A stretch of DNA of 64,000 nt from Kudoa neothunni. Lineage: Eukaryota; Animalia; Cnidaria. Both the position numbers and the translations under genes were made by a program. Positions within the stretch are counted from its first letter, which is position 1; each line of letters opens with the position of its first letter. The stretch lies in NCBI GenBank assembly GCA_964304625.1, contig OZ199840.1, forward strand, positions 7,417,635 to 7,481,634, in the 5' to 3' direction. The notes under the pieces were generated by a model that did not search any database, was not told where the DNA came from, and worked only from the letters and a program-made list of their open reading frames with translations. This document shows positions 20,797-47,503 of the stretch, piece by piece.

Positions 20797-21681
20797 TCAG
20801 TTTTGCTCGAATGATTGATGGCAACAAGAAAATCTAGTAGTACAGTGATCCCAATAATTCCATCCTGGTCCATCGTTGACTAATTTTAAATTTTTCACCA
20901 AGTAACCGCATAACATTACTGAATATCTGCACTGAATATTCCGCACTTAATACGTCTTACCTAATATTACAATACCAGGGCATTTTCAAAATTGTTTAAA
21001 ATATGTTTGCATGTGTTTTCTTGAAATTGAACGTTAGTCAGTAGAAATTCAATATGTCTTTTTTGTTCATATAAAGATTTTAGTAAAATCTTTAGAATGT
21101 ATAAATTTGTTTGTAGGCAGAAAAATTATACTCGGCAAAATTCACAATCGGGTTCATTCCTTATTACTGACGCATCTTAAATAATATGTTAACCTTGCCA
21201 TATAATTTAGAATATCTGTTTACTGTTGAGATTTTTGAGAATGAAAACGTTATTTCGGTATCTAGTTGAAATTAATTCGGTTTGAAGACTCGTGATTAAG
21301 TTTTTGCGGAAAATATCTAGAATTGGGCACTAAACATATCTTAACGTGAGTTTTTCGACCCAATAAAACAGACATACAACGTATGGGGAATTATCGCATA
21401 GTCTCTTCGTTATATTTAAAAGATCGTTCGTTAAAGTCTCTATATTACTTTTGTTACAAGTGTTGCTTATTTGTACTTCGATGTGCTAAACAGTTTTAAT
21501 AAATTTCGGCGAAATGCACATACTGTCTTAATATTCATTGTAAGCGAATGACCTGATTTAACGCTCCACGAGAATAGCCAAACAATTAACCACTGTATAA
21601 AACCCGTTATATCAAATATGGTGATCAAATACTACTAACAAAAAAACTAAGGATACAACTCTCAAGTTTATCGTTCTTCAT
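20797..21681 (-). CDS. Saposin-like (SAPLIP) protein, array copy 1, 7 exons
   Basis: Hand-spliced: MKNDKLESCILSFF/WLIVWLFSWSVKSGHSLTMNIKT/HIEVQISNTCNKSNIETLTNDLLNITKRLCDNSPYV/CPILDIFRKNLITSLQTELISTRYRNNVFILKNLN/NASVIRNEPDCEFCR/ILLKSLYEQKRHIEFLLTNVQFQENTCKHILNNFENAL/CRYSVMLCGYLVKNLKLVNDGPGWNYWDHCTTRFSCCHQSFEQN*. Confidence 0.88.
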
Positions 21682-22026
21682 TTGTTAGTTCTCACTGCAA
21701 TGAAACGCAATATATATCTAATGTTTATATTCGAATAATTTATTAATATACAAAATATTTTAGTCAATATTTCAAAAAAATTAATATTTATCTGGAAATA
21801 ATTCCTTTAGGATTGTACTATAAAGACCATCCGAACAAAAATTTTAATATAGAAATATATTTTCAAAGATAAGGTGATAATTTGCTGATTGTATAATTTT
21901 ATAATAAGAAATAATTTACTTAACAACATATGGTAAAGATGAAATATTTTATTCGAGATATATGATGTATTTAAAAATTAAATTAAATTTAAACCTAAGC
22001 CGACATTCAAAAGATACCTAATAGAG

Positions 22027-22561
22027 CAAAGATTTTCAGCCATGGGATAAATTAAGTGATATCAACATTGGTTAAGAGCATTTTATCCACAACACGGTTT
22101 TTACGTGCTTAAGGATTTCAAAGGAATATACTATTCGGGATTATTAAACTCGAATAAAATTTTGATAAAAATGCTTAAAATGTTTCTAAGAATAAGTATT
22201 TAACAATTATTTATAAAAATTAGAGCCAGTCACTTTTTTATGTCTCTTTTATCTTTTAGAGATGTAGCCTAATAATACTTAAAGTGATGATTTGCATTGT
22301 AAATAATATTTAGATATAACATATTATAATAAATAAAATCTGTAGACAGCCTGTGAGTAGTGGTTGTCGGGATTAAAACTTGTTTTCGCGCCGGCGTAAA
22401 TGCCGTTTAGGATTAAAATTTACTGTGTAAGTAGCCTCTGCCTTAGTTAAACCAATATAAAAGTTTAAATTAAATATGGGTTTAGCTTCCAAATTAAGAG
22501 GGTATGTTCGGATTTTAGTTCAGATGGCGGGTATAAATTAAATAAAAAGTTAGAACCCTTG
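22027..22561. mobile_element. hAT-type MITE family A, copy 1
   Basis: Shares internal blocks (e.g. gatgtagcctaataatacttaaagtg) and the agaacccttg end with 48183-48794 and 51732-52341. Confidence 0.7.
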
Positions 22562-23298
22562 CGTTATAGTAAATTTTACATTTAATCGATCTAATAGCGA
22601 AAACGATGAAATCAAAGATTTTCACAATTTTTTTTGGATTTATGTACAAAGCTAACACTTTTCGTTTACAATAAACAAATCTCCTCTAATTTTAAGAACA
22701 TGTAATGAAATTAAAGATATAACAAATTAATGAGCGTGGTGCGAATTTAGAGATATTTAAACGCATCTCCGGTGCTGCATATACAAATAGTTAGATTCTT
22801 GTTGTATAATAAATCAATCTTAAATCGTGTTTATGAATAATAAAAATGCGTTGATACCAACGATATTTTCGTTCAATTTCAGAAAAAATTTAAACCCCCT
22901 AAAAATAATAATACGCTTGGATCTTAAGATGATATTAAATTTAATAGTAACTAAAATTAATGCGTGATATCCACCTACACAATGATTAATGTTGAATGTA
23001 TTTTTTAAATATTTAGGTTTCTTCAGATCAATAAAAATTATATCGAACTTTATTTTTTGCATGATACTATTTAGTATGATTTAAATTATTAAAATTTTCT
23101 TAAAAAAATTATTCCTTTTAGTATATTTGAGAAGAAAATTTATAAATCTCCGGATTTTATAAGGTCTAAAATAGTTATTTTATTACGAGATAAAAGAAAT
23201 AAATTTTTTTCGAATTATTTACATTATAAAAGTTTGCAAATAAGAATTCTATCAATTAAAAAATTTATTGAAAAAAGTCGTGAATGCTATGATTGTTA

Positions 23299-24172
23299 TT
23301 ACTCAGGTGGTGGAATTTTGCATGAAAATCTATCAATACAATGATCGAGAACATTCAGTCCATCTTCATTACTAAATAGTTTCAAATTATTAACCAAAGA
23401 TCCACACAGCGTTAACGAGTATTTGCACTAAACATTTAATCGTTAGAGTTTGAATCCAACCCATTATTTATTACAATTAGCATTTGGGAAAATTGTAAAA
23501 TATGTCCGCAGATTTTTTCTTGAAACTTATCATTACTAAAGAGTAATGATAGGCGGTCTCTTTCCATATATGCTGAAATGAGCATGGCCTTCAATTATTA
23601 TTAATTCATCAAATGAATTAAATAGAATATTACTTGACATATTTCACACGTAGGTTCATTTCCCAAAACTAAGCCTTGAATATTATAATAATAACTTCCT
23701 AAAAGATTACCGATACTTTTGCGTTGGTTGCAATTGGCAATATTTCTGCAATTGATTTCCCTCAATAAAGATCTTTTTAAACTTTCAATTAAAATTTTGT
23801 GGAATGAACCCAAGATAGGACACTAAATAATAGTATTCGACAAACTTTACGTGGATATTTCTTAATTTACCGTGTACGTTAAATTTTTACACATCTTCGT
23901 TGTTACCTGGAGAAGTCCTTGTGAGAGGATCTCAACATAATCCGAAACGCTCACTTCAGTTGAAATCATTTCAGAGTGCTTAGAGGGAACATCGTTTTTT
24001 AGATTCATTAAAATTATTTAGTTTTTACATTCCACTTTTGTATGCCAAGAAACTGAATATTGCCATTCGAAAGCATTATTGGTAAGATCTGCTTAATAAA
24101 AGTAAATAAATTGGATGGTCGACAATAAATAACAATAATTAAAGAGTGAAAATATTCAAAAAACAATGCCAT
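23299..24172 (-). CDS. Saposin-like (SAPLIP) protein, array copy 2, 7 exons
   Basis: MALFFEYFHSLII/QILPIMLSNGNIQFLGIQKWN/HSEMISTEVSVSDYVEILSQGLLQVTTKMCKNLTYT/CPILGSFHKILIESLKRSLLREINCRNIANCNQRKSI/GLVLGNEPTCEICQ/AMLISAYMERDRLSLLFSNDKFQEKICGHILQFSQMLI/CKYSLTLCGSLVNNLKLFSNEDGLNVLDHCIDRFSCKIPPPE*. Overlaps ORFs 23601..23813 and 24014..24202. Confidence 0.88.
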
Positions 24173-24949
24173 CTTTAATCTAGTGAGTCTCAACAGAAAC
24201 ATTTGATTATCTTTAAAATGTGTGATTTAAAACAGTACACAATTATCTTAATAATGGTGTTATTAATTTATTGAAAAATATGCAATAATTGTTTGAGTGC
24301 TATATGTTTCATTCTTAAATATTAATTTCCCTCTTGAATCCATATAAATTATCAAATATATTTAATTATATTCTCAAATAATTGTTTTTAATATTTGTTT
24401 AATTGGGCATATTTCGTATTTATCATTTAATATAAAAATAAATAGATTAATTTGATTCATAATATAGATATTGTTTAAAAGTTTTTAAACAGAATACTCC
24501 TACAGGTGGGATGCATTTAAAATGGAGACATTTTTATTTAAGAATTAGATTCTATATTCCGAAAGATCATTTATAATGTCTCAACTATTACATCATATCA
24601 TTATTCAATTAGTCATTTTAAAGCTCTTATTAAAGTATTAATTATTTTCGATGAACATTACCAAATGAATCGATTATGAAGTATTTTAATGAACCCACTG
24701 GAATTGCTTACGAATTAAACTACTTACGCAAAATAAAATCACGGGTATACTTTATTAATACGATGGCATCTACAAAATCGTCGTATTCTTATCATAGTAT
24801 TAAAAATAAATAATATAAATAATGTAATGAAAAATATAAATTCGGCTTATACTTGCGCAAATAAAATTTTCGTCCAGGAATTATGTTTGAAGAAATTGAT
24901 GATTTGTTTCTGTGAGTTATAATAGAGTTATTGTTTCTTAGGGGGTTGT

Positions 24950-25808
24950 TTAATGGCGGCATCTGAGTCTGTTTGAGCAATGATCCCAATAGTTATATCC
25001 AGGTTCGTTCTCACTTAATTTCAAATCTTTAATTAAAAAGCTACATAAACTCAAAAAATATTTGCACTAAAAATGTATTTATGCCATAATTGTTATCGAA
25101 AATATTACCAATAATTTTTCCTGTGAGTCTACGATATGTCCACACATATTTTCTTGAAACTGGGAATTTGAAAAGAGAAATCGCAAATGGTCTTTTTGGT
25201 ATTGAAGAGATTGCATCAAGGTCTTAATGATAATAAAATATAGCACAGAGGTAAAGGAATACTTGGCAGAACGCGCAATCAAATCCGTCGCCAACAATTA
25301 TTCCTGAAAAATGTGTTTAATAAACAAGAAATCTATCTTCGTACTATTATTTCGGCCATTTTTACAAAGATGGGGACTGTTACTGCAATTCTTTCTTACG
25401 TAATAATGACGTTTTAAAGTCACCGAAAATTTTTTGTGAAAACCGTCCATAATTTGACACTAATTATAATGCTTCAAATGTATATATACACTAAAACAGA
25501 AATACAATGTATGGCAAACTTTTGCATATATCATTTTTGATTTTTAATAAGTCATTCGATAACATTTCTGTGTAACGACTAACACTTATCCCCTTTGGGA
25601 CGGTTCCATAAAACTATAAACAATTATTTTCAAAGTAAAATTAACAATAATTTTTACAGTCCTAGGAGAGTTATTTATTTGTTGTATATTATCGCATCGC
25701 CTAAAAAATTTCGAAAACTAATTATAGGAGATATTATTGAAACTATTTATCGAACAACTAATCGACCAGAAAAAAAGAGAAAAAACAACTAACGATGTCG
25801 ATCTTCAT
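24950..25808 (-). CDS. Saposin-like (SAPLIP) protein, array copy 3, 7 exons
   Basis: MKIDIVSCFFSFFL/FSKFFRRCDNIQQINNSPRT/FYGTVPKGISVSRYTEMLSNDLLKIKNDICKSLPYI/CQIMDGFHKKFSVTLKRHYYVRKNCSNSPHLCKNGRNN/RIIVGDGFDCAFCQ/TLMQSLQYQKDHLRFLFSNSQFQENMCGHIVDSQEKLL/CKYFLSLCSFLIKDLKLSENEPGYNYWDHCSNRLRCRH*. Confidence 0.88.
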
Positions 25809-26698
25809 TCGCTTATATATAACAAAGTAATTCAAAATTTAATAAGTGATTAATATGGTAATAATTTTATAAATTAGATCAAATCCTATTATGAATTAAA
25901 TGTAAAATTATTATATCTAAACTAATTCCAGACGATATTACATATAAATTATGCACGTCGATAATATTTTTATAATTTATTTCGATAAAATAGATTTAAA
26001 TATTTATTAAATTATTTAGAAAAAATAAAATTGAATTCTCATTACTTAAGTGTTCATTTATTTTTGGATTATTAAACTGAATAAGATAGTTAATTTGTAC
26101 AATTGTTGAATGCGAGGTCTCCAATGAGGTATTATTATTTAACACTTTTTAATTAAATTTTTAAGAAAAATATATTATCTATACTATCTAATTATCATAT
26201 CTAGAATAGTATATTAGATGTTAAATCAACTATCCAAGTCTGAATATGGAATAATAACCATTTGTTTAAGTCCAAAAACAATAGATAATATTAACTCTGA
26301 TAATAAATTCAAAAATAATTTGGCTAAAATTAAGAAAAAATTTAAGGTAGATATAAGTAATAGTAGTCTCAAACTTCAACAACACTCATTTGGAAAAAAT
26401 TACGATAGAAAAGTTTAAATTAAAATCAAGTTTCTATAATCGTAAGCAGAAAAAATATTCTCCTTCCATTAATGTGATAATTTTGACAAATCCTTAACTG
26501 AAAATCAAAAATATTAAATTTTCCTACCTGGAGTCTTACTTCGGAGCAGCGGTTCTTAATTTTTTTTCCTCGCGGACCCCTAATTTGTTTAATGCATAAT
26601 CCAATCATTAATACAAATATTTTACCCTTTCGTCCCCATTGTTCACTTTAATGAACAGATAAAAAACGATTTAAAATTATTGTTAAATGATTATTTAA

Positions 26699-29600
26699 CC
26701 TTCTAAATAGCTTGCAAAGTTACACCTTCCAAATAAGATTCGGGTGTATTTCGACCCCACATTTTTTTATGTTTGCATAATAAATATAAATTAAACTGTT
26801 TATACAAGTTTTAAGCAATATCCATCGACAAAGTGTTGTAAAAAAAGTGTAATAAATTTACTAACACGTGTCACATATGCGCGGTCAACGGGGATTTTAA
26901 GTTTTTGATGATTTAATTATATCTAGAATAAGGAAAAGCCAGTGCATGCGCTTAAAATTTTATTTATTATTAATTTCTAATATTTTAAACAGTTATAAAA
27001 TTATTAAACAAATTTTATCTCGATGTAAATGAGACAACATGTTAAATAACAGAAGTAATATCATAAACAATTCAAACAAACAGTTTTAGAACGTTTTCTA
27101 CAGCATGACGCGTTCAAACTTCGACATTTTTCTGAGGTTTTACGATATTTTTGTCTTTTACACAATTGATACCTTTGAATCGAATTTTTCGGAACGTTAT
27201 TCACAAGCATGCTATGCTAGCTGAAATGTCTCCTTTTCTTCGCGTTTTTAAATAATTTCTCCTGCTTATATTGGCTTGACGAAATATTTCTTTATAAACT
27301 GAAAACCGATTTATCAATGAAATATCAACTCCCCCCTTTGTAGAGTTTAATGGACTATTTTACATCAGGTTTGTAGGACACTTCTTCGGAATCGTCGGTA
27401 TTAGTTGCAGAGGTGCACAACGTATACATAGGTTTGTTTCTCTTGGAAAGTACCTTAAAATCATCTTTTTACAATCAAACACAAAAAGAGAAGAATTGAC
27501 AGGACTATTTTTCAGTGGTCTTACAGTATTTCACGACCAATATGCAAGCATGGCGCATATCCATTAAAATTTAAAAAAAGTTATGTAACGATGAAATAAC
27601 AGAGAATGTTATAAATATTAATAATATATATTTTTAATTTCTAATTATTAATTCCTTCCTTATGTAAGGAAGCCCATAAATAAGATTTTGAATGTTTCAC
27701 ATAATTCGCACAATTCGTTTCTGTTACTTCTTCTTGGCTTTTTCTGATACATTTGAATCGCTCTGAATGCGTGTTAGGTCCCATCCATCTTACAATTAGG
27801 GCTTCAAAAATTCGAGGGTATAAGGATTATCCTCTATTTCGACGAGATTAAGTCGATGTATTAACAAGATTGTGTATTTCGTTCACAGTGGATTTTTGTA
27901 ATCAATTATTATATTTTTTTAAATATCAGCTAAACTACAATATCTGTGTACGAACTTCAGGCGGTGTCGTATACAAACTCGGAAATAAAGTCGTTTCCAA
28001 CAATTCGTCCTGTTAATCCACTTCTTTTTCTAAAGTGTTTTCATTTTTGTTCTTATCACAAAAAATTACATTATTTAGTTAAATTCATATCAAAAAGAAT
28101 AACCTGTAAACTGGAAATAAATCTTAAGTGGAGCACATTCGGATTCACGTGGAATCTCTATGTCGTTGATAAATACATCAACGAATTTATTATTTCTCTA
28201 TAATTTTAACAAATTCGAAGTCGTTAATTGTTCACATAATTTTTGTTATATGTTTCTGTTAGTAATAAGTTTGTAAATGTTCAATTTAGACTTCGTATTT
28301 AAAAACAGAACTTTCTGATTTATTCCATATAAAATTGGAAGAAGGATATTTCAATCTAACTATAGCTTAACTTAATGTGGTTTTTAGTTTATAATTTTTT
28401 TCGTGTAGTTTATTCATGATTAAAAAAATGTTATAACAATATTTGTTCCAAAATTCACACATTGTGACGGATTTGCATATGTTATTTAACATTGCAATAT
28501 AATAAACAATGGATAATCCATCTAAGCGGCATTTTATCTGTTATCATCATAAACAGTGTGTTTTTCTACAGCGCTACATTAAATTAATAACAAACATGGA
28601 AATTTTTGATTTATTTTATTAAGTTATCTTTTTATTTATATCCGTTAAGTAACTAAAAACAACAATAATAAAAAATGATTGTTTCATAAAAATTAACTTT
28701 GAAGTAAAGTAATCGTCACAAATCAAAATATACGATTTTTAAGTTTTTTAAATAAAATCCAATATGGATGTTAAACAGTCAAAACACTTGTTGAATTATT
28801 TATCTCAACAATATAAAAATAATGTAAACCCCCAAATAAACATTTTTTACCTAGTTTTGGAATATAAAGTGAAATATTACGTCATATTTTATAATCTACT
28901 TCAATATCTTTGTGTGGTTGAATGTTTCAAGCGTTTTAACCTAATATAATTAATTTACTGAGATGTATTATCTATCAAAATGTTTGTAAAAACTAGTAAC
29001 AACCACAAGACATTGGAATCATGAAATCCCTATTCAAATCCTTAATAATTCTCATTTCAACACATAATCACCCTCGATTTTTTAAAGACCTATTCACAAT
29101 GGATTTAAGTTGTCCAAATACCTTCTCAATTGGATTAAGGAAAGGCGAATAAGGAGGTAGCAGCAAAAATTTAAGGGGACTGCTTTCAAACAATGTCTTT
29201 ACACTTTCAATTTTGTGGAATGCAACGTTATCCATTATTAAAATGGTTTTTTATATTGAAATTACTTCCTAATTTTCGAAAAGATCCGTTAAAAATCAGG
29301 AAAAACAAATCCGTTCACACCGCTTGTGTGAATTTTGAATCCCAAATCTTTCGCAGCTCATGGCTTCTATTAACGTAATATTTTGGGATCTAATAGATTT
29401 TACTTTTAAGTTTGCTCTAGTTCCCGTAAATTATCTGCCTTGAGAATGTCGAATTGACAGAGAGAACCTTGATTCGTCAATGAATAGAATTTCAGGACAT
29501 TCTGGTTCCAGGCGGATGTATTCGTTCACATAACTAAGAAAATCACAAGCGAATTATAAAAATTAATTTTATACTCGTATCTTAATGAAATAATTCGAAG

Positions 29601-31396
29601 GGAATTTCTGTCCATTGGAATTAATGATATTTTTTCAGGATATAGTGAAATTCATTCAGAACCCTGAAGATTGTTTGTAGAGAAACCAGAATGGAGTATT
29701 TTTCGAACACCTTTTCAGATAATTGTTTAAGAGATAGCGTACAATTGTCATCCACCTCGTTGAGAATAAATTGTTTTTGATCAGCGTTTAATAATGAATG
29801 GCGATCTCCACCTGTTGTTAGTCTTTCTCCTGGTCCCCTTTCATTTATCTTTTTGACAATTCTACTTATAGTAGATTCGTGAATGCCTAAAGACTCAGAT
29901 ATTTGACGGTTGGTCTTCCTATTCTGAATGGCTTTAGAAATTATATCAAAATATTAATACTTGGAGTTGTTGGGAAAATCTTTCCCCTATCTTTTTTATT
30001 TACAATTTCGTATTTTCTTGTGATTTTATTAATAATTTCTGATTCAACAGGCATATCTGAATCTTAATTTTTAAAAAATGACTAGCGCGCGCCATGTTTG
30101 CATATTTGTAGTGAGATACTGTAAATATGGCTGAATTTCCCTTTTATTAAATATTGATGTATCAAGTAAGATTAGTTTTTTCTTAGCAGTTCGTCAGCAG
30201 GTTACACCGACGTGAAAAAGTTATTACAAACCAAATTTCGAACAGAACCATGTAGTAGGCTATATAACTTCAATATTATGTTTTTTCCGACGTTTTTTGC
30301 CTTTCTATCTAATTAGTTCTGCTTTCCCAAATCGACGTCGATATTTATACATAGGTTGATCTAGGATCAACTGCGAGAAAAAACTTCATATTTGGCTGGT
30401 TTGCTAGGCACGTATTGCTTAAATGGGCGGAAACTACGTGTAAGCAAATCACTCCAAATAGTCCAGACGTCCCGAATATGGCAAAATTTATCAGACTCCT
30501 TTCTCAGCTCTCGAGTTGCCTGATCATCAAAATGGAGAGTCCTTGTAATTTGCCTGAATCTATTAAGACAAAAAAGATCTCTATAAATCTGTCGGCCTTC
30601 GTCAACTCCAAATAACTCCAAAATGGGTTCCTGTTGGTCTTTATGGATAGCTATAACAACTGGCATCCAATATAACCTTCAAATTAGGTTTCATCTCAAT
30701 TATTCCAACTACTGCCAAAGTGATTAATGATTAGCACCAAATATATTTGTAAATTTTAGGATTAGATCGTAAATTTCTTGATTCAAAAATGACTGGAAAG
30801 TATCACCTAAATTAGTCACTCTCAATAAAGCGAAAAATGACACACCAGGACGATTGTTCAAAATATTTTCTGACCCAGTTGTTGAAATTATAGGTTTATT
30901 AACTGACCATAAAGTTCCATTTTTGTCAAAAAAAGAATCGGTGGCCAATTCAACGTCATAATCAGATGTATCAGATGAGAGTTCATGAAAAAGTGAACTT
31001 TTAGCATCGAGATCATCAAAATCGGAGCAACTATCGAAGTAATCAGAACTCATAGTTTATAGGGTGGCGCACATGCAATATAATGTGGTCACTAATATAT
31101 TATTATTCAGTCAATGTTTTATCGATTAAATTTCCTTAAACCTCAAATATAAATATTATTTCTTACAGTTTTACCAAAAAAGCCTGGGATCGATTTATAT
31201 CCCACTTTTATTTAGATGTTTTTGATTTAATTTTTTTCATTTTTAAAATACAAATACTTTATTACATTTTTACAAAGATCTCTATAATATAAAAGATTAC
31301 ATAAAGTCAAAATCAAATTAACCTGACCATTTATGTTTAAAAAATGACCTTATAGCAGCCGTGGGGTCGAAAATACATCCTATTTTATTTAGAAGG
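26699..31396 (-). mobile_element. piggyBac transposon, interrupted by a Tc1-like element
   Basis: TTAA at both ends (26695-26698, 31397-31400), TIR ccttctaaata and subterminal inverted gtatt(t)tcgaccccac. Transposase pieces 30724..31053 and 30367..30666 (LHFDD, QYVPSKPAKY), with KGGVD near 27330. Confidence 0.9.
27524..30121 (-). mobile_element. Tc1/IS630-like transposon (2.6 kb), degenerate transposase at about 28950-30054
   Basis: About 33-bp TIRs cagtat(t/c)tcac(g/t)ac(c/a)aatatgcaa(g/a)catggcgc flanked by TA. Motifs ILFIDES and LPPYSPFLNPIEKVFGQLK on the minus strand. Confidence 0.9.
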
Positions 31397-34322
31397 TTAA
31401 AAAGAAATTAAATATAATTTTAACATTAGTTTAATTCAAAAAATTCTTGACGAAAAACAAAAATTTGGGAACGAAAGGAAAAACTTGAATTATTGATCTA
31501 TCCCCAATTTTATTAAAATATTTTCTGTGTAAATTAATTATGTAGTTCTTTCGTTTAAAAATATCTATTAAATATTTTAAATCATTATTACATGAATTTT
31601 GTTAGAAATTATTAAATTCTAACAAAATATAGACGATGGCGCGTAATATTTCAAAATTAAACATTTAATGAAATTTGTTGAATTTTTATCTATGCATAGG
31701 TAAATATTTGAGAGTGAAATCCTTAAAAAATTTCTGAGGGAAAAATGTTCTTGTAATAATCGAAATATTTTTATTACATAAAATCTTTATTTTCGTTAAT
31801 TATTATGTTTACTACAACAAAGAATTAACAAAGAGAACTTTTGACATAATAGAATGCGAGATTAACGCAAAATCCTACTTTTTTATAAATAAAATAGACA
31901 TTAAAATAATATTTAATGAGTTTTTGTAGTTTCTTTTTATCAATAAGTTCACATAATTCTGACAAGTATCTGAAAAAGCAACACGCATATAAGCGATTTC
32001 GTGACTTCCTTTATGGTGACCAGCACGGAAATCTAGTTTCTCAATAAAAGTTTTTGTAAAAGGAGTAATCAATCTAACTGCATACTCTGCAACTTTAATA
32101 AATATATTTTGATAATTTTTAATTCTAATCAAATAACCTATTGAATAACTTTCGTTTTATAGATTTTTTTATAAAATATATTATAACAAGAAAATTTGGG
32201 AATAAATACAAAATATCTATAAAAAACCATAGCGCAAGGTATATTTTAAATTTTTAATAGTTACGCTAACGTTCAAAAATACCTAATTACAATGAATGTA
32301 TTATTATAAAATTGAATTAAGATTTTATTTAAATCATTCACGGATCCCAGGTTAAGAACCTTTGCTTTAGAGCTTGGCACTATAAAATTTTTGGTTCCAC
32401 AGAAATAAAATGTTTCCATTGTAGTATATTTAATTCCAAAACTATCTTATTTGTTCAAAACTAATAAAAATATGCGGTTCATGATGACTTTACCAAACCA
32501 AATCCCTAAGAGGTTTCAGTCATCAAAATAAGGGTAAGAGAATAAGCATTATAATAAAGATAAGCATAGTTAAAATCCTAAAAGCGATATATTTAGACTA
32601 GAAAAATAATAATATTTTTTTATTTTATATTAATAAAATGGTATTTATGTATGGCGACACGTTAATAGATTCTATCTATTACAATGAGGGGTTATTATTG
32701 CCGGAAACCTAATTAAATATTCTCATCCACATTTTGAGGTAAAGATCACCTCAGCCCTATTTCGTAAACTCTTAAGACGAGGGCATTGCGACATCAAACT
32801 ATTGTATCATTTTAGATGAATACCCGTCAACTCAAATGTTTAATCCAATCCTCTCCCATAAGACAACTTTGGCTGCACATGTAGCACATTTAAAGATGAA
32901 TCTCAAATTTTACAACAGCTATTATTAAGGAATACAGAAAAACTAAGGCAGAAGTAGTGAATTGACCTGAAACAGGAATTAATTTGGAATTTTTGAGGTC
33001 GAGGTTTGATAACAACTTTTCATGTGGAATTTGTTCTTTAATGTTACGTAATCTAGCATCACACAATTACTTAAACCAGAGATCTCCAAAGCGGTCGATA
33101 ATTACACTTCTGTCGAAAGGAGGTCGATACGTGTTATAGAGATTCCACAGAATTTTCTGGGCGTATAACGTAATGCCTCCCACCTTTCTACTCCATACTA
33201 AATTATTTAATTATATTAATTAAAAGTACTCCATAACATTTGTTAGTTATATTTTGGTCAAAATAAATTTCCAGTTTTCCAAATTATATCATTCAATTCC
33301 TTTTATTTATGTAGAGGCATATTTAACAGCTCTTAAAAAAATAACGAATACGTTAGCGTTGAAATTTTCTCCAAATTAAATGATCACTAGTATTGATTGT
33401 TATCAACAGTATGTATAACAATAAAGATAGTTTACATTAAGTTTATAATTGCCTAGGGAAGATAAGTCATATTTTTAAAAGTAGTTTGAGTAAAAATTAC
33501 AAAGGCTACGAAAATAATTAAAATAATCTGAAATTGTCGTTCCAATCGCAGTGGACACTTCGAAAACGCTACAAGCGATCTCAAATTATGGAACATTATC
33601 TTAAGATAAAGACATTCTTATTAACTTCAAGAGACAACCATGAGCAAATATTAACTTTCCTATATATATGACGTAACGTAATCTTAAAATTTGCCGTTGT
33701 ACTTAATTTGTGCAAAAGTATGTAACTATAATCATATACAAACGACCCAACTTGGGAGGTCTAATGAGTATAACGATTATGATGAAAAACATAATCGTTG
33801 CGGTAAATTTTCTAATACAGTTATTTTTGCTGTATGACTTGATTATATACACATGTGTAAATTTATAATTATTAAGATTTTTCTGATACATTTTGATACA
33901 ACATAGTTAGTAAATATTTTTCCGATTAGTATAATGTTGAATTTTATTTTATATTGGAAATACAATATTAATGGGATATATTGCAGATATTTGTACTTGT
34001 CATAGTCAAAAAGCTGAGAATACTTTAATATTTTTAATTACAACTCTGGAAAGGGTCGACGAAAATAAAGTTTGGAGATCCCTGACTTAAACCTATACGT
34101 GAGCTGAGTCCTGCTTATGGCATGATTATATCTTTCATAGTTTCATCTGAATCTACGCGAGTCCTACCAATGGGACTTATGTAATATTAAAGTAAATCCA
34201 ACTTTCTAAATAATTTGATAATTTATAGAGATAAGCAATATTAGAGAATGTTTTAGAGGTAAACAGTGTAAATAACAGTAAATTTTAATGGTTAATCGGT
34301 TCATTTAGTATCAACTGGGCGT

Positions 34323-35165
34323 TCAATGGTTACACAAAAACCTAGAAGTACAGTATGAGTGAGCGTTGATTCCAGTTTCGGTATTTAGCAGTTCCAACCT
34401 CCGCACCAAATGGCTACCTAAGTTTAAAAAGTATTTGCACTAAACAAATATTATTTGAACCAATTATGTATAGTACCGTAAAGTCATCCAACAGATTTGT
34501 AGCTGTGCCACAAATATTATTCTGAAAATGAAGATTTGTAAAAAGCAATGTAAGCCTCATCCTTTCAGACATAAGTGCGTTTACAAATCTCTTAATTATT
34601 TATAATTACAAGAACATTAGCAATAGATCGGTACCTGACAGAATAAACAACTAGGACCGTTTCCCACATAGATAGCTTTACAAGATTTATCCAAAATAAC
34701 ATCAATAAAAATCATTTATACTTTTGTGGGGTTCGCATTCAGTTGTTTTTTCACAATTGCTTATCGCCCTTAATTTTTTATGGGAATTCTCCATTAAACT
34801 TTTGTAAAAGGAGTTCAAAACTGGGCACTAAATAAAAGTTAACGTACTCTTCAATCAATTCAACTTACGGTATATGGTAATTTTTGGCATATACTCTTGG
34901 CAATCTTCAAGAAGTCATTAGGTACAGTGTGTGTGTAGTTCGATGAACGAATTGCGTTGGAGATTGTATCATGATACTAAAATTTGTCAAAATACAACGA
35001 TAAAAATTTGCTGTTACCTTTTGTGTAGATAAATCGACCAGTTGTTTATTGCAACACATTAAAATGATTGAAAACTTAATTTATCTATGATGAGACAAAT
35101 TTCAAGTATCGGAATTAACTAACAAGCAGGATTGGAATACGACACTTAGACGAATAAGTCAGCAT
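34323..35165 (-). CDS. Saposin-like (SAPLIP) protein, array copy 4, 7 exons
   Basis: MLTYSSKCRIPILL/FSIILMCCNKQLVDLSTQK/YHDTISNAIRSSNYTHTVPNDFLKIAKSICQKLPYT/CPVLNSFYKSLMENSHKKLRAISNCEKTTECEPHK/TIYVGNGPSCLFCQ/RFVNALMSERMRLTLLFTNLHFQNNICGTATNLLDDFT/CKYFLNLGSHLVRRLELLNTETGINAHSYCTSRFLCNH*. Confidence 0.9.
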
Positions 35166-35410
35166 AATTTGAATATTTCTTCCAAAACGATATATATACA
35201 ATCATAAATTGAATATAAGGATTATGAGATTCGAATGAACATTATGATAAATATGTGTGATGAATTACCGAATAGATACTCTTATATATATATATATATA
35301 CCAGCGATTGGAACCCCTATCTAGTTTATTTATTCGGCCTATTCTTTTGCGATTGTTACCATAACTACTATAATATTCATATTAGTAGATAATTTTGTTG
35401 ATAGAAAATA
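34550..35410 (+). repeat. About 860-bp near-identical direct repeat, copy 1 (other copy 40991-41858)
   Basis: By eye only two substitutions plus a difference in the (TA)n tract. Confidence 0.93.
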
Positions 35411-35651
35411 AATCATCTTATTATAATGCCAATATTATACAGTTGCGTTAGTTGTCATTTTTTGGCGTAGAGAACGATGTGACCGAAATTATGGGGAACA
35501 ATTAATTAAAATAATTTGGATATTTCCAGTCAATTATGGCTATAATTTATGATAATAATTTATATTTTTATTTCCATAGCATTAATGTAGATAATTCTAA
35601 AATTGTGTCACATTAATTAGTTTTATGGATCATGATATTATCATTATAGTA

Positions 35652-37186
35652 CAGCCGAACTCCGTTTATCCGAATATATTGGGACCTGACATTTTCCTTT
35701 CGAATACCGAAATTTCGGTTTATCGAAGTTCTATTAATGCGCATGTGCGGCGGAAAAATTGTTAGGTTGGTTACCTACTTTATTTTTCATTATTCAATGT
35801 TTGTTTTATATTTTTAAAGAAAACTCTACTATATATATAAGTTATACTAATTAATACAATGCGAAAACATTAGTTTAAGGCATAGTAGTTCTAGACCCAA
35901 CGCAGTCTGCACACGCATGCTACCGATATGTGCGACCTTAACGCCGGTGCGCCATACTACAACAATACATTCTAGATTATAAAAAATGGGATATTATTAT
36001 TAATTTTTTATAATTTCCTCACTATTTAGATATTTTGAGTTGTACTAATAATGATGGTAAGAATAGTAAAGTAACAGTGACGAGTATTTTCCCTGAATTC
36101 TCCATTACGATATTTAGAATTTCCTCATTAATTAAAATATGTCATATTCCAATAATTTAATATTGATTAATGATTGTTAAGATTCAATAAGACTTAAAAG
36201 TGGAAGTGTCATGGGATAAAACTGGTGTATGAACTTTATTGAATTGAGTCAATTCCATGGATAAATCGGCGTTATGAAGTCACTGCCAGTTCGCAATTAA
36301 ACAATCCAACAAATTCCATTTTTATATTTTATTACACATGAAAAAATATAAGGGAGTTTGTCTTTACCCAACATTTATTCGTTCATCATGAACACGGAGC
36401 CGTGGACAGATAGCACATTGGTGTGACACTCGGACTCAAAACCTTGAGGTAATGGGTTCGATTCCGCCGGTGGTCAGACTCTGCTTCCGTGTCGGTGGGT
36501 GTCTATCCCATATTTGGGAGCTGTGGTTAAAGTGTACGCTCGCTGTTGAGTGGAATGCGCTGGCAGCCAGATTTGCGTGAAGTGGGTGAACGTAAATAGG
36601 AGTTTGAATCTCTGGAACCCATCGAAAGACAAAGTAATTTGCAGTTCCTACAGAGCCAACGTCCTTAAAGGGATAGGGTTCGGGGTGGTGGTCGCCCTGA
36701 GACGAGAGGATGTTTAGTGGGTTAAAGTCCCGCACTACCGCATAAAGATAAGTGACGGAGTTTCATGTTACGTCCTGCGGTGCCTAAAGCCTTAATGGAA
36801 GAGGTCTGGCCAACCAGAGTTCCACAACCTAATAAGTTGCGCCAGGGGTTTTACCTTGTAAAAAAAATCATGAACACGGTTGCATTTTGAACATAAAATA
36901 CTATATTATCTACGTTACACTATTTCTATTAATCCAACATAAACTCAAATTTAATAAATAACGAACATATGTGCCAACAAGATAAATGTAGGTCCCATTT
37001 TAGCCGAGCACTAATCCAGACTTAAAGGCATTTTTAGCCGAAAACTCCAGCAAAAAGTTGTTTCGGATTGCGGTTGCTGAAATTTCGGTTAAATGAAATT
37101 TTTTTATTTAGAATCTACATCATTTTCGAATAAATTTTAAAAAATCATTCGGATAGCGCGATTTTCGGATAAACGAGGTTCGACTG
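35652..37186. mobile_element. Non-autonomous pogo/Tigger-like element containing a SINE
   Basis: TIRs cagccgaactccgtttatccgaa / revcomp cagtcgaacctcgtttatccgaa with TA TSD. The paralogous empty site is near 42095. Confidence 0.85.
36398..36866 (+). mobile_element. tRNA-derived SINE, copy 1
   Basis: Pol III A box TAGCACATTGG, B box GGTTCGATTCC, A-rich tail, 13-bp TSD atcatgaacacgg. Confidence 0.92.
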
Positions 37187-40296: not shown

Positions 40297-40750
40297 TTTT
40301 AATCCAACCCCCTCTTTTGAGATAACTTTAGCTGCAGATATTTCACACTTAAAAATGAGCCTATAATCTTGCAGTAACTCACACTGAGGAATAACGACAA
40401 CCTAAGACGGAACCAATGAAACGACCCCAAATAAGACCCAACTCGAAGTCTTTGGGCCGAGATCCGAGAACATCTCCGTACGTGGAATTTCTCATCTAGC
40501 GTTATGTAAACTACTCGTCACGTACAACTGCTTACACTTACATGTTATCTGAATTTTCTATGACACTAAGATTTGTCGAATTCCATCTAATTTTCTTGAA
40601 TTCCGCCAGTGGAACATACATTACACCGAAGAAACATTGATTCTCTAAATAATTTGAAAGCTAATAGAGACAAGAAATTTTCTAAGTTGTTTTAATAGAC
40701 ATGAAATGTAACTAGAAACAAATTTGTATTGTTAATTAGTTCATTAAGTA

Positions 40751-41606
40751 TCAAGTTGGTGGTTGATGAACGCACAAATATCTAGAAGTACAGTACGAGT
40801 GGGCGTTACATCCTTTTTCAGTATCTAACAGTTGCAACCTCCTTATTAAATGGCCACCTAAGGTTAAAAAGTATTTGCACTAAACAAATATTAGTTTGAG
40901 TCAAATTCTTATCACACCGTAAAAATATCCAACTGATTCGGAGCTATGTCACACATTTTTTGAAGGAAGTACGGATTCTTCAAAAGCAACGTAAGCCTCA
41001 TCCTTTCAGACATAAGTGCGTTTACAAATCTCTTAATTATTTATAATTACAAGAACATTAGCAATAGATCGGTACCTGACAGAATAAACAACTAGGACCG
41101 TTTCCCACATAGATAGCTTTACAAGATTTATCCAAAATAACATCAATAAAAATCATTTATACTTTTGTGGGGTTCGCATTCAGTTGTTTTTTCACAATTG
41201 CTTATCGCCCTTAATTTTTTATGGGAATTCTCCATTAAACTTTTGTAAAAGGAGTTCAAAACTGGGCACTAAATAAAAGTTAACGTACTCTTCAATCAAT
41301 TCAACTTACGGTATATGGTAATTTTTGGCATATACTCTTGGCAATCTTCAAGAAGTCATTAGGTACAGTGTGTGTGTAGTTCGATGAACGAATTGCGTTG
41401 GAGATTGTATCATGATACTAAAATTTGTCAAAATACAACGATAAAAATTTGCTGTTACCTTTTGTGTAGATAAATCGACCAGTTGTTTATTGCAACACAT
41501 TAAAATGATTGAAAACTTAATTTATCTATGATGAGACAAATTTCAAGTATCGGAATTAACTAACAAGCAGGATTGGAATACGACACTTAGACGAATAAGT
41601 CAGCAT
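40751..41606 (-). CDS. Saposin-like (SAPLIP) protein, array copy 5, 7 exons
   Basis: Exons 1-5 identical to copy 4, then RFVNALMSERMRLTLLLKNPYFLQKMCDIAPNQLDIFT/CKYFLTLGGHLIRRLQLLDTEKGCNAHSYCTSRYLCVHQPPT*. Confidence 0.88.
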
Positions 41607-41858
41607 AATTTGAATATTTCTTCCAAAACGATATATATACAGTCATAAATTGAATATAAGGATTATGAGATTCGAATGAACATTATGATAAATATGTGTG
41701 ATGAATTACCGAATAGATACTCTATATATATATATATATATATATATACCAGCGATTGGAACCCCTATCTAGTTTATTTATTCGGTCTATTCTTTTGCGA
41801 TTGTTACCATAACTACTATAATATTCATATTAGTAGATAATTTTGTTGATAGAAAATA
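40991..41858 (+). repeat. About 860-bp near-identical direct repeat, copy 2 (other copy 34550-35410)
   Basis: Direct sequence comparison. Confidence 0.93.
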
Positions 41859-42568
41859 TAATTTAAAATACAATATTCTACATAAATAGTAATTAAGTCA
41901 TTTGTAGTGTAGAGAACGACGAAATTAAAAATAAATGGATAGAATAACATTAAAATGGTTTCTTCATTTTGAGTTAATTTCAGCCAAAAATTATGATAAT
42001 ATAATAATTTTTTTACTACGCTCGTATTAATGTAGATAAATATGAAATTTCTCGACTATATGCAATTTCGAAAATAATGGTATTGTCATTATAGTAGATT
42101 CGAATCTTTAACTGTGATTAAGTTTTTAGCCATCTCGAATCGGATTTCCTAACTTGTAAATTAATCTTAACGCACTTATATAATATAAAAAACGTCTTCA
42201 AATTATAAACAAAATTGGAATAACTTATTTAATTAAAAAATAAATACCATAATGCTAACATCCTATTGTATAGATTTCATTACCAAAATGACCAATTCCT
42301 CTTTAAATCAGCTAGCAAAATCCTATAAGAACTGTTGACTTATTCAAGTTACATAAATTCAATTTAATCTGTTATTTTATTAAATTAGTCCAGTTAACAT
42401 ACATGAAGTTGTAATATTTTTATCATTTAAGACAAACAATTTTTTTTATAAATAAGGGTAGATAATTTAGATTTGCAGGAAACCGCAAGAAAAACTATGT
42501 TCAAAACATTCTAAATGATAAAGAGCAATGTGTGTTTAGTCGGGTTTGTTGATCTGTAAGGTAGAAGG

Positions 42569-43415
42569 TTAATGGGGACAAATAAACCTGTCCCTACAAT
42601 AACTACGAGAGTCATATCCTGTGTCATTATCCTTTAATTTTAAATTCTTAATCAGGTGGGTGCACGTATTTATCATATATTCGCACTAAATGTATATTAT
42701 ATGGTAATTTCTATTTTTTTATACATTATACCGTAAACTTCCCAAAAAAATTGGGAGGATCCTTACAAATAACTTGCTTTAGTTGAGGGTCATCAAAGAA
42801 CAACGTGAGTCGGTTTCTTTCCGACAAAAGTACGTCTAAGAATCTCTTTAACATATATTAGCGCATCAGAACGATAACAAAGACAAGCACTTGGCAAAAT
42901 GCACACTCAGGATCATTCCCTACGATGTTAGCTTTAAGACATTATTAAATGAATGGTATCACATCAATAGTTAGCTAATATACTTCCATGATATTGTTTG
43001 TTGCCATGGGGTTGTTCATTAGAGTTCATTTTTGTTTCCAAACCATTTGTAAAATTTGTGTAAAACGAAATCAAGATTGGGCACTAAATAACTTCAAATA
43101 TCCCATCAATCAAATCTACTTACCGTATGTGGTAAACGCTCACAAATTTTATTTGCAATCTTCAAATAATCTTTTGAAACTTGTTTAAGACTGTCTTGGG
43201 GATTGGCATTATTTGAAATTCTGTGAAGATGCTAAAGACCAACCATTAGTCAATTTGAGAAATTCACTTTTTACATTCAAGTTAAGTGAATTTATTGGCT
43301 GAATATTATAACCCAGAATAAATACACCTAGAATCTGAATTATATATGTTTAGCATGACTAAAATGAACTAATACGAATAACAGAGTGCAGATGAAAAAA
43401 GTTATAAATCTTCAT
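42569..43415 (-). CDS. Saposin-like (SAPLIP) protein, array copy 6, 7 exons (exon 1 donor uncertain)
   Basis: MKIYNFFHLHS/ILGVFILGYNIQPINSLNLN/HLHRISNNANPQDSLKQVSKDYLKIANKICERLPHT/CPILISFYTNFTNGLETKMNSNEQPHGNKQYHG/TNIVGNDPECAFCQ/RFLDVLLSERNRLTLFFDDPQLKQVICKDPPNFFGKFT/CEYMINTCTHLIKNLKLKDNDTGYDSRSYCRDRFICPH*. Confidence 0.86.
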
Positions 43416-43913
43416 TAGGTATGTGTTCATTCCTGAATATTTTTCAAAAAGACGATAAGAAATTTATATTATATTATATGCTGACGAAACTTATGGATAT
43501 TGCAAATGATATGATTTTGAATTCATTTTGGAATGATTAATAAACCGAATATTTAAAATAGATACTTTATCGTGTTGACCAATAATTTTTTTTAATTATT
43601 TTTAACGATTAATATTAAATTTATTTAAAGTCTCGATTACGTCTATGATAATTATATAGCTTAAATTGTTATATGCTCATTTCGATCAGACAAATTAAAT
43701 TGATATAATAAAAGTGTGCGATAATTGAAAACAGATAGTAAAATGTGATTACTATAAAATAATTGAGAAATGAGATGAATACTCTGTATACAGGTTAATT
43801 TGTATAATAATTAATTATAATTAAAAATAATTTATAAATTGACAAATCATAATAAAAATAATGCGCTCACGGGTGTCAAATTGTAATTATTGAACTAACA
43901 AATAGTAATTATA

Positions 43914-44363
43914 AGCCGTGGACAGATAGCACATTGGTGTGACGCTCGGACTCAGAACCTTGAGGTAATGGGTTAGAATCCGCCGGTGGTCAGACTACTG
44001 CTTCCGTGTCGGTGGGTCTCTATCCCATATTTAGGAGCTGTGGTTAACGTGTACGCTCGCTGTGGAGTGGGGTGAGCGTGAATAGGAGTTTGAATCTCCG
44101 GAACCCATCGAAAGACAAAGTAATTTGCAGTTCCCACAGAGCCAACGTCCTTAAAGGGATAGGGTTTGGGGTGTTGATCGCCCTGAGACGAGGATGTTTA
44201 GTGGGTTAAAGTCCCACACTATCGCATAAAGATAAGTGACGGAGTTTCATGTTACGTCCTGCGGTGCCTAAAGCGTTAATGGAAGAGGTCTGACCAACCA
44301 GAATTCCACAACCTAATAAGTTGCGCCAGGGGTTTTACCTTGTAAACAAAAAACAAACAAAAA
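43914..44363 (+). mobile_element. tRNA-derived SINE, copy 2
   Basis: Highly similar to 36398-36866 with a small internal deletion. (AAAC)-rich tail. No clear TSD. Confidence 0.9.
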
Positions 44364-44945
44364 TAAATGGATTTTTTTGATGTCTATTATCAGATAAAAA
44401 ATTATATATCTTAAACTCTTTAAACTTCCTGTAAAATTAATCTAATTAGGCATATTTTGATATAAAAAGTTTAAATGCAATATATAGAGTATTTAAAAAA
44501 AATTCATTGCCAAAGATATATCCTCTCACATCATTAAAATTTAATAATTTTTGTTTTCTTTATTATATGCCGACGAAAATTTAAAAATTAATCTTTACAA
44601 ATTACTATGTAGGTAGATTTAATTTTTACTCCGAATATTGGAATTTAATCATTCTTTTAAAAACACTATTAATTTTTAAATAATTGGTTAGTTATAGTTT
44701 TAAATAGTATTCAAAGTGTAATTATATTAATTCTATAGTATAATAAAATTATCTATTATGTATATATAAACAACTAAATTAATACTTCCTTTTGAAATAT
44801 TTGTATTCACAATATAATTAATGAAAAAATATAGAACATATGGTTCGATTGATGTTGTTGGACCAGGGGTCGGCGAGGATATAAACCACACTTAAAAATG
44901 GAAGTGAAAAGTGATGGAAGCATACTAACTTATTAAAATTGATGC

Positions 44946-45783
44946 TTAATGGGGACATTGAAATCTATTAGTGCAATGATCCATAACGTCCATTCCCTGT
45001 TCATTGCTACCTAATTTCAAATTTTTTATCACGATACCAAACAAAGTCATCACATATTTGCACTAAATGTATCAGGTGATGTGGCGTAAGAATCAAGAAT
45101 TTTACAGTCACACTTTCAAGTGGATTCCAAAGTTGACATATTCTTTGTTGAAATTGAGGATTTCCAAAAATATGATACAGCCGTGCCCGCTCATATTGAT
45201 ATGAATAATAAATCGCCTACATTTTTAATCTACTTGTATCTAAATTTAAACGAAAATACTCTGCAAATTGCACAGTAGGGTCCATTTCCCACAACTATAG
45301 CTAAATAAAATTCAAAAAGGTATATTTATTAAATATTCTTGAAAACTCTTACGATTCGTAAAATTAGTACAATTGTTTTTGTTTTCAATTTCTTGTAAAT
45401 TTTCTAGGAATATTTTTTGGAATGGATTGAAAATTCCACGCTAAAAATTTTAGCGTTCCTGTGAATTGAAGTATTGTTACTTTGTAGAGATCTTTTTTAC
45501 ATAATTGTGCAGAAAATTTTAACATATCCTCCTTTACGATTTTTATGTCGGTTTTAATCTTAACATTATTGATAGGTTTAATAATATTCTAAATAATTAT
45601 TTTAGGTCAATCGTTCCATTAAAAATGTTTATACCTTTGAGTGATTCGCTTCGATAGATTGAACATTTCTCAAAAATATAAATGTAATAATTCTCTTAAT
45701 TATCAAAATAAATGGTTTAAAGTATGCAAAGTATCCCTCACAATAACTAAAGTGCTTAAATCACAAGAAATTAATCCCCCCAT
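44946..45783 (-). CDS. Saposin-like (SAPLIP) protein, array copy 7, 7 exons
   Basis: MGGLISCDLSTLVI/RIITFIFLRNVQSIEANHSK/NIIKPINNVKIKTDIKIVKEDMLKFSAQLCKKDLYK/RGIFNPFQKIFLENLQEIENKNNCTNFTNRK/TIVVGNGPYCAICR/AIYYSYQYERARLYHIFGNPQFQQRICQLWNPLESVT/CKYVMTLFGIVIKNLKLGSNEQGMDVMDHCTNRFQCPH*. Confidence 0.88.
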
Positions 45784-46630
45784 TCAGTAGTATAAGCAAA
45801 TGGGAAATCAATACATATGCTCATTAATCAAATCATAAAAGCAATATATAAATAATATTTTATAGAATGCGTTTATCTCTGAAAAAAAGCATTGAATATT
45901 AAATGATATTTTTACATTTATTGATGCCTAGTTAAATAAATTACGATTATTATTTGTATTATAATTATCCTTATTTTTATATTAAAAATGGTATATTCTA
46001 CCTTCAATATCGATATTTTTGTGTTGGTAGTTGCATTGTAATGAATATGCAAACTTAAAATTTAAGATAAATTGAAAAAATATTTTAATTAATAAACATT
46101 GATAGACCTATGTAATCAAATATTTAATGGGGTACTCAACCTAAGTTTTATTTGCAATATATTTTACAATAAAGTTTATAATGATTTTTAATCAATTGAA
46201 AAAACTATTATAAATCGTTCATGGCACCTAAAAACTTTCATTTCTTCTTATGTAAAATATAAAGGTAGTTTAAATAATGTATAATAAACCTAAAAAATAT
46301 GAATTAAGTTACGTATATACTTCTTTTATTTTTAACGCAATCAATTTTTACAATTAACTATAAAAACCTTTGAAATTTTAATATTCAGATTTGTTCAAGC
46401 AAAATCAGTTTACACTTGAAAAAAATCTTAATCTCTATTCCATGCAAGCTATTGTCATTTTAACTATAAATAGTATTTTTTATTCAGGATTATGATAGCA
46501 ATTTTATTGTAACAACAATACAACAATTTAAGCATTAATAAAATATAAATATCTCAGTATTACGCAAAAAATAATTATCGTCTCGCTAAGTGACAAAAAA
46601 TATTTGAATATTGATACGAGTTAAAAACGA

Positions 46631-47503
46631 TCACACACTTCCATCATGTGTACAAAAAAATCTCGCGTTACAATAATTTCCTATGTTGTAGGAGGGATCC
46701 TCTTCTATTATTTTCAGAGAACGTAAAAAATTCGCACCTAGCTTGAATAAATAGTGACACTAAAATAGGTAGTTATATAATTATCTTTAATTATTTATTT
46801 TACTATAGATTTTTCAATAATTTGAGAGCTCTGTTGACAGAGTTTGTTTTGGAAGTCCAGATTGGATAACAGTAACCTAAGTCGTGTTTTTTCATATAAT
46901 AACGTTGCTAACAAGGTCTTAAGTGATTCATAGTAAATTAGACAGTAAAATCAATTTTTACCTTGCAAAAGTTGCATTTTGGTTCGTTTCCGACTAAAAT
47001 ATCTTCTTATGAATCTAAATAATTTTCATAATTCATTAACTATTACTTTTATATTTGCATTCAGTGAAATTATCGCAATTATTTAAATGAGCTAATTCAG
47101 TTCGTAATTCTCTCAGGTAATTTTTATTTATGGACTTAGCCAGTGAACACTGAATAAAATATAACACACTTCTTGATCAAACAGTCATACAACGAATGGT
47201 AGCTGTTCGCATACACTATTCGTAATTTGTTCCAAATCCTCTGATAACACATTTGTGTAATGATAGACACTTATTCCATTTGAAACCACCTTATAATTCT
47301 AAAATACATAAATTTTGTAATGATACATCACAAACAATTTTTACGTTCCAAGAATGTAGACCGGCCAACTGAAGATTACAAAACAGCATTAAAATTCTCA
47401 TACACTTTATTTAAAATTAGTTAGGATCAATACAAGAATTAAAACTAACAAATCTTTGAAAAGGCTTGCAAATTTCAAAACTTTCGTTCATGACTGTCTT
47501 CAT
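46631..47503 (-). CDS. Saposin-like (SAPLIP) protein, array copy 8, 7 exons (alternative ATG 47491)
   Basis: MKTVMNESFEICKPFQRF/CMRILMLFCNLQLAGLHSWN/NYKVVSNGISVYHYTNVLSEDLEQITNSVCEQLPFV/CSLAKSINKNYLRELRTELAHLNNCDNFTECKYK/KDILVGNEPKCNFCK/TLLATLLYEKTRLRLLLSNLDFQNKLCQQSSQIIEKSI/CHYLFKLGANFLRSLKIIEEDPSYNIGNYCNARFFCTHDGSV*. Confidence 0.88.

Follow-up and report, generated by a model that had tools for sequence, protein, structure and literature searches.

On the minus strand of a 64,000-nucleotide stretch of Kudoa neothunni DNA (contig OZ199840.1; this whole stretch is the window that was analysed), positions 20797-47503 hold an array of eight paralogous genes, designated G1 to G8, each composed of seven exons. 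The outer bounds of the array fall exactly at the stop codon of G1 (20797) and the ATG of G8 (47503). The coding sequences comprise 188-199 codons, all 48 introns begin with GT and end with AG, intron lengths range from 37 to 77 nucleotides (nt) but are mostly 40-50, and the intron phases 0,0,0,1,0,0 recur in every gene. The gene models are listed below, with exons given in the order in which they are read and with alternative boundaries in parentheses.

20797..21681, minus strand: G1, 7 exons, 189 codons; introns of 42-77 nt, all GT..AG; exons 21681-21640, 21592-21563, 21485-21378, 21329-21224, 21166-21132 (alternative acceptor 21175), 21089-20976 and 20931-20797, the last including the stop codon
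23299..24202, minus strand: G2, 7 exons, 196 codons (206 with the upstream ATG); exons 24172 (or 24202)-24134, 24088-24029, 23978-23871, 23822-23717, 23668-23634, 23588-23475 and 23427-23299
24950..25808, minus strand: G3, 7 exons, 198 codons; exons 25808-25767, 25717-25658, 25613-25506, 25459-25345, 25303-25263, 25222-25109 and 25066-24950
34323..35165, minus strand: G4, 7 exons, 194 codons; exons 35165-35124, 35074-35018, 34976-34869, 34827-34722, 34675-34635, 34590-34477 and 34439-34323
40751..41606, minus strand: G5, 7 exons, 198 codons, a recent duplicate of G4; exons 41606-41565, 41515-41459, 41417-41310, 41268-41163, 41116-41076, 41031-40918 and 40879-40751
42569..43430, minus strand: G6, 7 exons, 195 codons; exons 43430-43383, 43334-43275, 43231-43124, 43083-42984, 42931-42891, 42845-42732 and 42685-42569
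44946..45783, minus strand: G7, 7 exons, 188 codons; exons 45783-45742, 45694-45635, 45588-45481, 45440-45353, 45300-45260, 45216-45106 and 45062-44946
46631..47503, minus strand: G8, 7 exons, 199 codons; exons 47503-47450, 47404 (or 47368)-47345, 47298-47191, 47149-47047, 46993 (or 47002)-46962, 46917-46804 and 46759-46631

A preliminary description of this DNA had interpreted a recurring plus-strand string as the mark of minus-strand splice acceptors that precede a cysteine codon, and this interpretation holds. The string GCACTAAA occurs 10 times where 2.1 occurrences are expected, a count reached in none of 100 shuffles, and all ten copies coincide exactly with an exon 4 or exon 7 acceptor, which reads TTTAG followed by a cysteine codon. 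When stop-to-stop pieces of the window were compared all-against-all, both classes of 3′ exon were recovered eight times on the minus strand, and two further classes were recovered seven or six times. Hidden Markov models (HMMs) of individual exons found exactly eight copies each of exons 3, 4, 6 and 7, which score 45-84 bits; no other piece exceeded 12 bits, and the models uncovered no further or relic copies of the family within the 64-kb window.

Complete gene models were obtained for all eight genes by an exon-chain search constrained to begin with an ATG, to use GT..AG introns of 30-130 nt and the phases 0,0,0,1,0,0, and to keep every exon open. As a control, this search was applied to candidates that consist of AG, 36-46 open codons and a stop, 120 of them on the minus strand and 101 on the plus strand. 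Among the minus-strand candidates, a full chain was produced only at the eight genes (plus one alternative AG within the last exon of G8) and no other candidate exceeded three exons, while none of the 101 plus-strand candidates yielded a full chain. The chain search, its control and the exon HMMs therefore agree on what had been proposed initially, namely eight tandem seven-exon genes on one strand with common intron positions and phases. Two of the accompanying figures needed revision: the proteins had been given as 195-205 amino acids long, for which our models give 188-199 codons, and the smallest exon had been given as 11 codons, a value that exon 2 of G1, with 10 codons, undercuts.

Exon lengths are well conserved in places, given that exon 3 measures 108 nt in all eight genes and exon 6 measures 114 nt in all except G7 (111 nt). 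The splice signals are GTA[AT] at donors and TT[TAC]AG at acceptors, and the guanine-cytosine (GC) content is 33% in exons versus 25% in introns. Phase continuity of the models was checked by arithmetic, one exon at a time; from sequence alone, the models are ambiguous at exons 1 and 2 and at the exon 5 acceptor of G1, G2 and G8. Upstream of the genes we found no shared promoter motif other than AT-richness, and TATA-like boxes lie 33-48 nt 5′ of the ATG only in G1, G4, G5 and G6. Two introns of G2, intron 1 (24133-24089, 45 nt) and intron 4 (23716-23669, 48 nt), are stop-free multiples of three, and thus their retention would not interrupt the reading frame. In this gene, one open piece of 73 residues covers exon 4, intron 4 and exon 5.

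Across exons 3-7 the paralogues are 27-41% identical. The proportion of synonymous differences (pS) is saturated at 0.68-0.85, the proportion of non-synonymous differences (pN) is 0.38-0.48, and none of the eight reading frames is interrupted. Given that synonymous sites are saturated, that replacement sites are not, and that no copy is broken, these are old, constrained and real genes, and we judge from these comparisons that the array is a set of old duplicates retained under constraint. A non-functional origin was nevertheless considered, in which the units are decaying duplicates, transposon-borne open reading frames (ORFs) or chance exon-like strings. The region is indeed rich in transposon relics, and exons 1 and 2 are poorly conserved. 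However, the frames have stayed open despite the saturation of synonymous sites and with pN at about half of pS, splice sites and phases are kept in 48 of 48 introns, the chain-search control is negative elsewhere, and the units are accompanied by neither a transposase domain nor a terminal repeat. We therefore regard this explanation as scarcely credible.

The array appears to have grown through local duplication, with at least one gene conversion involving G4 and G5. A duplicated block of approximately 1.47 kb (34205-35659 and 40644-42104) encompasses these two genes and is 87% identical overall. Within it are 651 identical bases (34550-35200 in G4 and 40991-41641 in G5) that begin 35 nt before the ATG and run through exons 1-5 and their introns into the start of exon 6. 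From exon 1 to intron 5 there is not a single mismatch, while identity drops to approximately 85% in exon 6, intron 6 and exon 7. Perfect identity over 651 bases, against about 85% in the rest of the duplicate, suggests gene conversion or a recombinant copy, and the tract looks like a conversion that left the C-terminal half of the six-cysteine module described below diverged. The diverged part is the sole unsaturated pair in the family, and it gives a non-synonymous rate (dN) of 0.17, a synonymous rate (dS) of 0.55 and thus a ratio (omega) of approximately 0.3. The proposal that the family is rapidly diversifying is not borne out by these values: positive selection is unsupported, with omega near 0.3 in this one pair and pN well below the saturated pS in the others, and diversifying selection is not shown by the data.

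The encoded proteins can be divided into three parts. Exons 1 and 2 specify 24-38 poorly conserved residues and constitute the least certain part of the models, but in most copies an uncharged hydrophobic run extends across the junction of these two exons. This N-terminus is most likely a secretory signal, and we refer to it as putative. Exons 3 and 4 encode a module of approximately 70 residues. Exon 3 carries one invariant cysteine, followed by x2-[LS/T]-P-like residues, and exon 4 begins with a cysteine in seven of the eight copies (G7 has an arginine instead). A further C-x5/6-C pair is present in exon 4 of five copies, and the complete arrangement C-x6-C-x23-C-x5/6-C is found in only these five of eight; exon 4 of G1 lacks both of the distal cysteines present in most copies, and that of G6 has the first cysteine only.

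The third part, encoded by exons 5-7, is the most regular. As had been noted in the preliminary description, all eight genes share six invariant cysteines in the pattern C-x2-C-x27-C-x10/11-C-x28-C-x2-R-[FLY]-x-C, which spans 78 residues when counted exon by exon. Saposin B-type domains typically have the elements C-x2/3-C, C-x~10-C and C-x5-C inside some 80 residues, and the array proteins conform to this. The C-x2-C element is placed such that one residue is left before the end of exon 5, and 26 residues precede the cysteine of exon 6. This cysteine is followed by 11 residues to the end of the exon, or by 10 in G7, whose exon 6 is one codon shorter. Exon 7 has cysteines at its positions 1, 30 and 36 and an arginine at position 33. 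A conserved motif had also been reported ahead of the first cysteine, and it is present, although its exact form is corrected here to [IVL]-[GR]-[ND]-x-[PF]-x-C. The module is split over three exons, and the introns between them all contain in-frame stops. A seventh cysteine occurs within exon 7 in four of the eight copies, the total number of cysteines is 9-14 per protein, and a histidine is found two residues past the last cysteine in seven copies.

Both halves of the protein have a phase 0 intron immediately before a cysteine codon. An internal duplication relating exons 3-4 to exons 6-7 was examined with hhalign, which aligns the cysteines but does so without significance (probabilities of 10% and 1%), and hence we consider such an event to be only a hint.

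The defining features of saposin-like proteins (SAPLIPs) are the packing of four or five helices and the three disulfides that a conserved array of six cysteines provides (PMC5890168). When exon 6 alone was modelled with AlphaFold2, helices were predicted at residues 2-18 and 20-37 with a predicted local distance difference test (pLDDT) score of 92. The corresponding model of exon 7 alone has a helix at residues 2-15, a loop, and a helix at residues 26-33, with a pLDDT of 71. Four predicted helices with cysteines near their ends are consistent with a saposin-type layout, although not decisive for it. With a hydrophobic moment of 0.34-0.67, the first helix of exon 7 is amphipathic.

On the basis of the cysteine spacing and these helices, we favour the interpretation that this constrained family of eight genes, with products that are probably secreted, is saposin-like, and we assign to it a probability of roughly 55%. 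If correct, the hydrophobic N-terminus from exons 1 and 2 would direct the protein into the secretory pathway. The exon 3-4 module, with its invariant cysteine, its nearly constant cysteine at the start of exon 4 and its distal pair in five of eight copies, would be followed by a disulfide-locked bundle of four helices encoded by exons 5-7, in which the predicted linkages are C1-C6, C2-C5 and C3-C4. The proteins, of about 190-200 residues, would be expected to function extracellularly or within a secretory or lysosomal compartment, presumably by binding lipids or membranes. Their SAPLIP activity might be any of lipid extraction, membrane permeabilisation, antimicrobial action or simple lipid carriage. 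The toxin-like role that had been suggested initially gained no support from these sequences.

Several results weigh against the saposin-like interpretation, and foremost among these are the searches for relatives, all of which were conducted exon by exon. When the eight copies each of exons 3, 4, 6 and 7 were compared with Pfam at E ≤ 10, there was no match to SapB_1, SapB_2 or any other relevant family; the sole match of exon 7 is to DEFB136 (E = 0.035), which we attribute to chance. Exon 7 spans the whole stretch from the fourth to the sixth cysteine that is modelled by SapB_2 (PF03489), and the absence of this profile among the matches of all eight exon 7 peptides at E ≤ 10 is therefore a fair test. 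Exon 6 alone has no Pfam or PDB match that would link it to SapB_1 (PF05184), which is a partial test given that this half-domain is split by an intron and has its first two cysteines in exon 5. Profile searches of the PDB with exons 7 and 6 gave no match (at E ≤ 10 for exon 7), and a Foldseek search with the exon 7 model found nothing.

An exhaustive HMMER search of 1.84 billion representative proteins with the exon 7 profile revealed no true relative, where a profile of 42 positions needs approximately 41 bits to reach significance in a library of this size, such that query length limits these negatives. Its sole match, P0001, is a repetitive translation in which the same 14-residue stretch is matched six times, and was rejected as spurious. 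Two scans of metagenome contigs likewise produced no relative; one locus from the second scan was dismissed because it has a 9-residue string in common with the family and scores no more than 4 bits with the exon HMMs. Two features of the proteins themselves also count against a saposin-like assignment. The spacing of 28 residues between the fourth and fifth cysteines is a few residues longer than in typical saposins, and the C-terminal half carries a net charge of only -3 to +5, and thus these proteins are not strongly cationic in the manner of NK-lysin-type peptides. The original assignment to the saposin-B fold is supported in part, by the six-cysteine spacing and the exon-wise helices, but has gained no profile match to SapB_1, SapB_2, the PDB or the 1.84 billion proteins. 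Because no SapB profile recognises these exons, and because the structural models are of single exons, we classify the family as resembling SAPLIPs rather than as a demonstrated member of this group.

The same negatives would also fit an orphan family whose secreted, helical proteins are rich in disulfides, in which either the fold is not that of a saposin or the role does not involve lipids or membranes, and in which the six-cysteine spacing has arisen by convergence. Such proteins might serve, for example, as small-ligand carriers or as signalling or recognition proteins. No exon matches SapB or any other family by profile or by sequence, the exon 7 model retrieves nothing with Foldseek, a single saposin domain would account for less than half of the protein, the N-terminal module of about 70 residues matches no family, and the additional cysteines are variable. 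However, over 78 residues the six invariant cysteines follow those of SAPLIPs in order and spacing, and helices are predicted between the cysteines as in saposins. Classic insect odorant-binding proteins have a six-cysteine pattern and chemosensory proteins have the four-cysteine pattern C-x6-C-x18-C-x2-C; neither set of spacings fits the array proteins, and there is no Pfam match to either family. On balance, we view an orphan family as possible but doubtful.

A further proposal is that the array, in a poorly sampled AT-rich eukaryote, represents a family of secreted proteins that has not been described before, is restricted to one lineage and has no detectable relative among the 1.84 billion representative proteins. 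In this proposal, an N-terminal module with up to four cysteines, two of them near-invariant, is joined to a complete six-cysteine saposin fold that cannot be recognised from sequence, and the products of these two modules are membrane-active factors for defence or for interaction with a host. We advance this only tentatively.

We also considered whether the proteins might be saposin-related but remain inside the secretory pathway, in the manner of the MANF/ARMET or Canopy proteins of the endoplasmic reticulum (ER), rather than being exported as effectors. A length of about 190 residues, a hydrophobic N-terminus and a saposin-like cysteine array joined to a second module are all reminiscent of these proteins, a resemblance that we treat as a lead only. 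On the other hand, exons 3, 4, 6 and 7 have no Pfam match to MANF/ARMET or Canopy at E ≤ 10, eight tandem paralogues at 27-41% identity are unlike conserved, low-copy housekeeping genes, and the C-termini do not end in a common retention-type tetrapeptide. Residence in the ER is thus judged to be very unlikely.

Returning to the saposin-like interpretation, the array proteins share with SAPLIPs such as saposins, NK-lysin/granulysin, amoebapores, Dictyostelium Apl and nematode caenopores the presence of six cysteines, identically ordered and almost identically spaced across about 78 residues, of four predicted helices between these cysteines, and of an N-terminal hydrophobic leader. They differ from SAPLIPs in having no detectable similarity to SapB_1 or SapB_2, in adding a further module, of some 70 N-terminal residues and 1-4 cysteines, in having the six-cysteine module divided across three short exons, and in carrying a seventh cysteine, in exon 7, in half of the copies. 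Their multi-copy, lineage-specific organization also has precedents, given that SAPLIPs occur in this form in Caenorhabditis elegans and in Dictyostelium, the latter with 17 Apl genes (PMC5890168).

Local tandem expansion of small, secreted, cysteine-rich helical proteins, as reported in the literature for the caenopore (spp) genes of nematodes and for trematode saposin-like proteins, provides a further parallel. Helminth and nematode SAPLIPs are typically single-domain proteins of about 80-100 residues that are recognised by Pfam and encoded by genes with few introns, whereas the proteins described here have approximately 195 residues, derive from seven exons and are not recognised by Pfam. 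The comparison with MANF/ARMET and Canopy is similarly divided, in that size, leader and the combination of a saposin-like cysteine array with a second module agree, but the array genes lack a profile match, are present in high copy number, are divergent and have no common C-terminal retention motif.

The surroundings of the array are AT-rich (26-35% GC across the window, which contains no N), and scans of the 64-kb window for tRNAs and Rfam families returned no match. The array itself is interrupted by two large spacers, one of 8.5 kb that contains Tc1-type and piggyBac relics and one of 5.6 kb. The transposon relics with assigned positions are as follows.

2967-3842, plus strand: pogo DDE_1 transposase relic
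16164-17069, minus strand: IS1595/Merlin-like DDE transposase relic
29624-29953, minus strand: Tc1-type helix-turn-helix (HTH) relic
30370-30678, minus strand: piggyBac fragment
62471-62962, plus strand: mariner HTH relic

Matches to a hAT dimerisation domain and to zf-C2H2_jaz are also present in the window, without an assigned position. The window is clearly eukaryotic, and the combination of pogo, mariner, Tc1, piggyBac, hAT and Merlin/IS1595-type relics with introns of about 45 nt would suit an animal genome with small introns. The pogo-type DDE_1 frame is adjoined by a stop-free frame of 460 residues (4477-5856, plus strand) in which no Pfam domain is recognised and for which a search of 5.8 billion clusters yielded no homologue among its candidates. 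An exact look-up of ORFs from the window in the sequence collection gave no match. Two repeat families extend into the array. Three copies of a repeat of approximately 470 bp, with 84-90% identity, are located at 36398-36867, 43914-44351 and 59792-60235 (inverted), and the first two of these lie in spacers of the array. This repeat probably belongs to an unclassified mobile element, and its third copy overlaps a stop-free piece of 278 residues (59993-60826) without a Pfam match. The second family comprises copies of about 280-550 bp with approximately 72% identity at 22033-22504, 48189-48739 and 51789-52317, one of which lies between G1 and G2; given that its matches occur in all three frames, it is probably non-coding.

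Other candidate host genes are found on either side. Two EamA-like transporter exons, at 12792-13082 and 49780-50058, flank the array on the same strand (minus), have Pfam matches with E values near 1e-6 and match each other; they may represent a paralogous gene pair that flanks the array or, alternatively, an older segmental duplication. Matches to HlyIII/PAQR are found in two adjacent plus-strand frames at 54999-55913, of which the second can be aligned with human AdipoR1/2 over about 130 residues (E ~1e-17). In a length-filtered search from which full-length PAQR proteins were excluded, the sole match of the PAQR exon is a 134-residue Logan fragment with 69% identity. The PAQR/AdipoR-like frames, which lie downstream of the array, are those of an ordinary host gene.

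The array alone opens no long-standing question. Its significance depends on which fold the C-terminal module adopts. If the fold is not that of a saposin, the genes would constitute an orphan secreted family. In either case, they form a clean family of micro-exon-like genes that is visible only when the DNA is read with splicing in mind. If the module is indeed a saposin fold, the array would represent another independent, large and lineage-specific expansion of SAPLIPs, as is seen in amoebae and nematodes, whose architecture, with two modules and seven exons, is unusual and escapes profile libraries. It would then help to map how far the saposin fold can diverge and to annotate short-exon genes that are overlooked by ORF-based scans.

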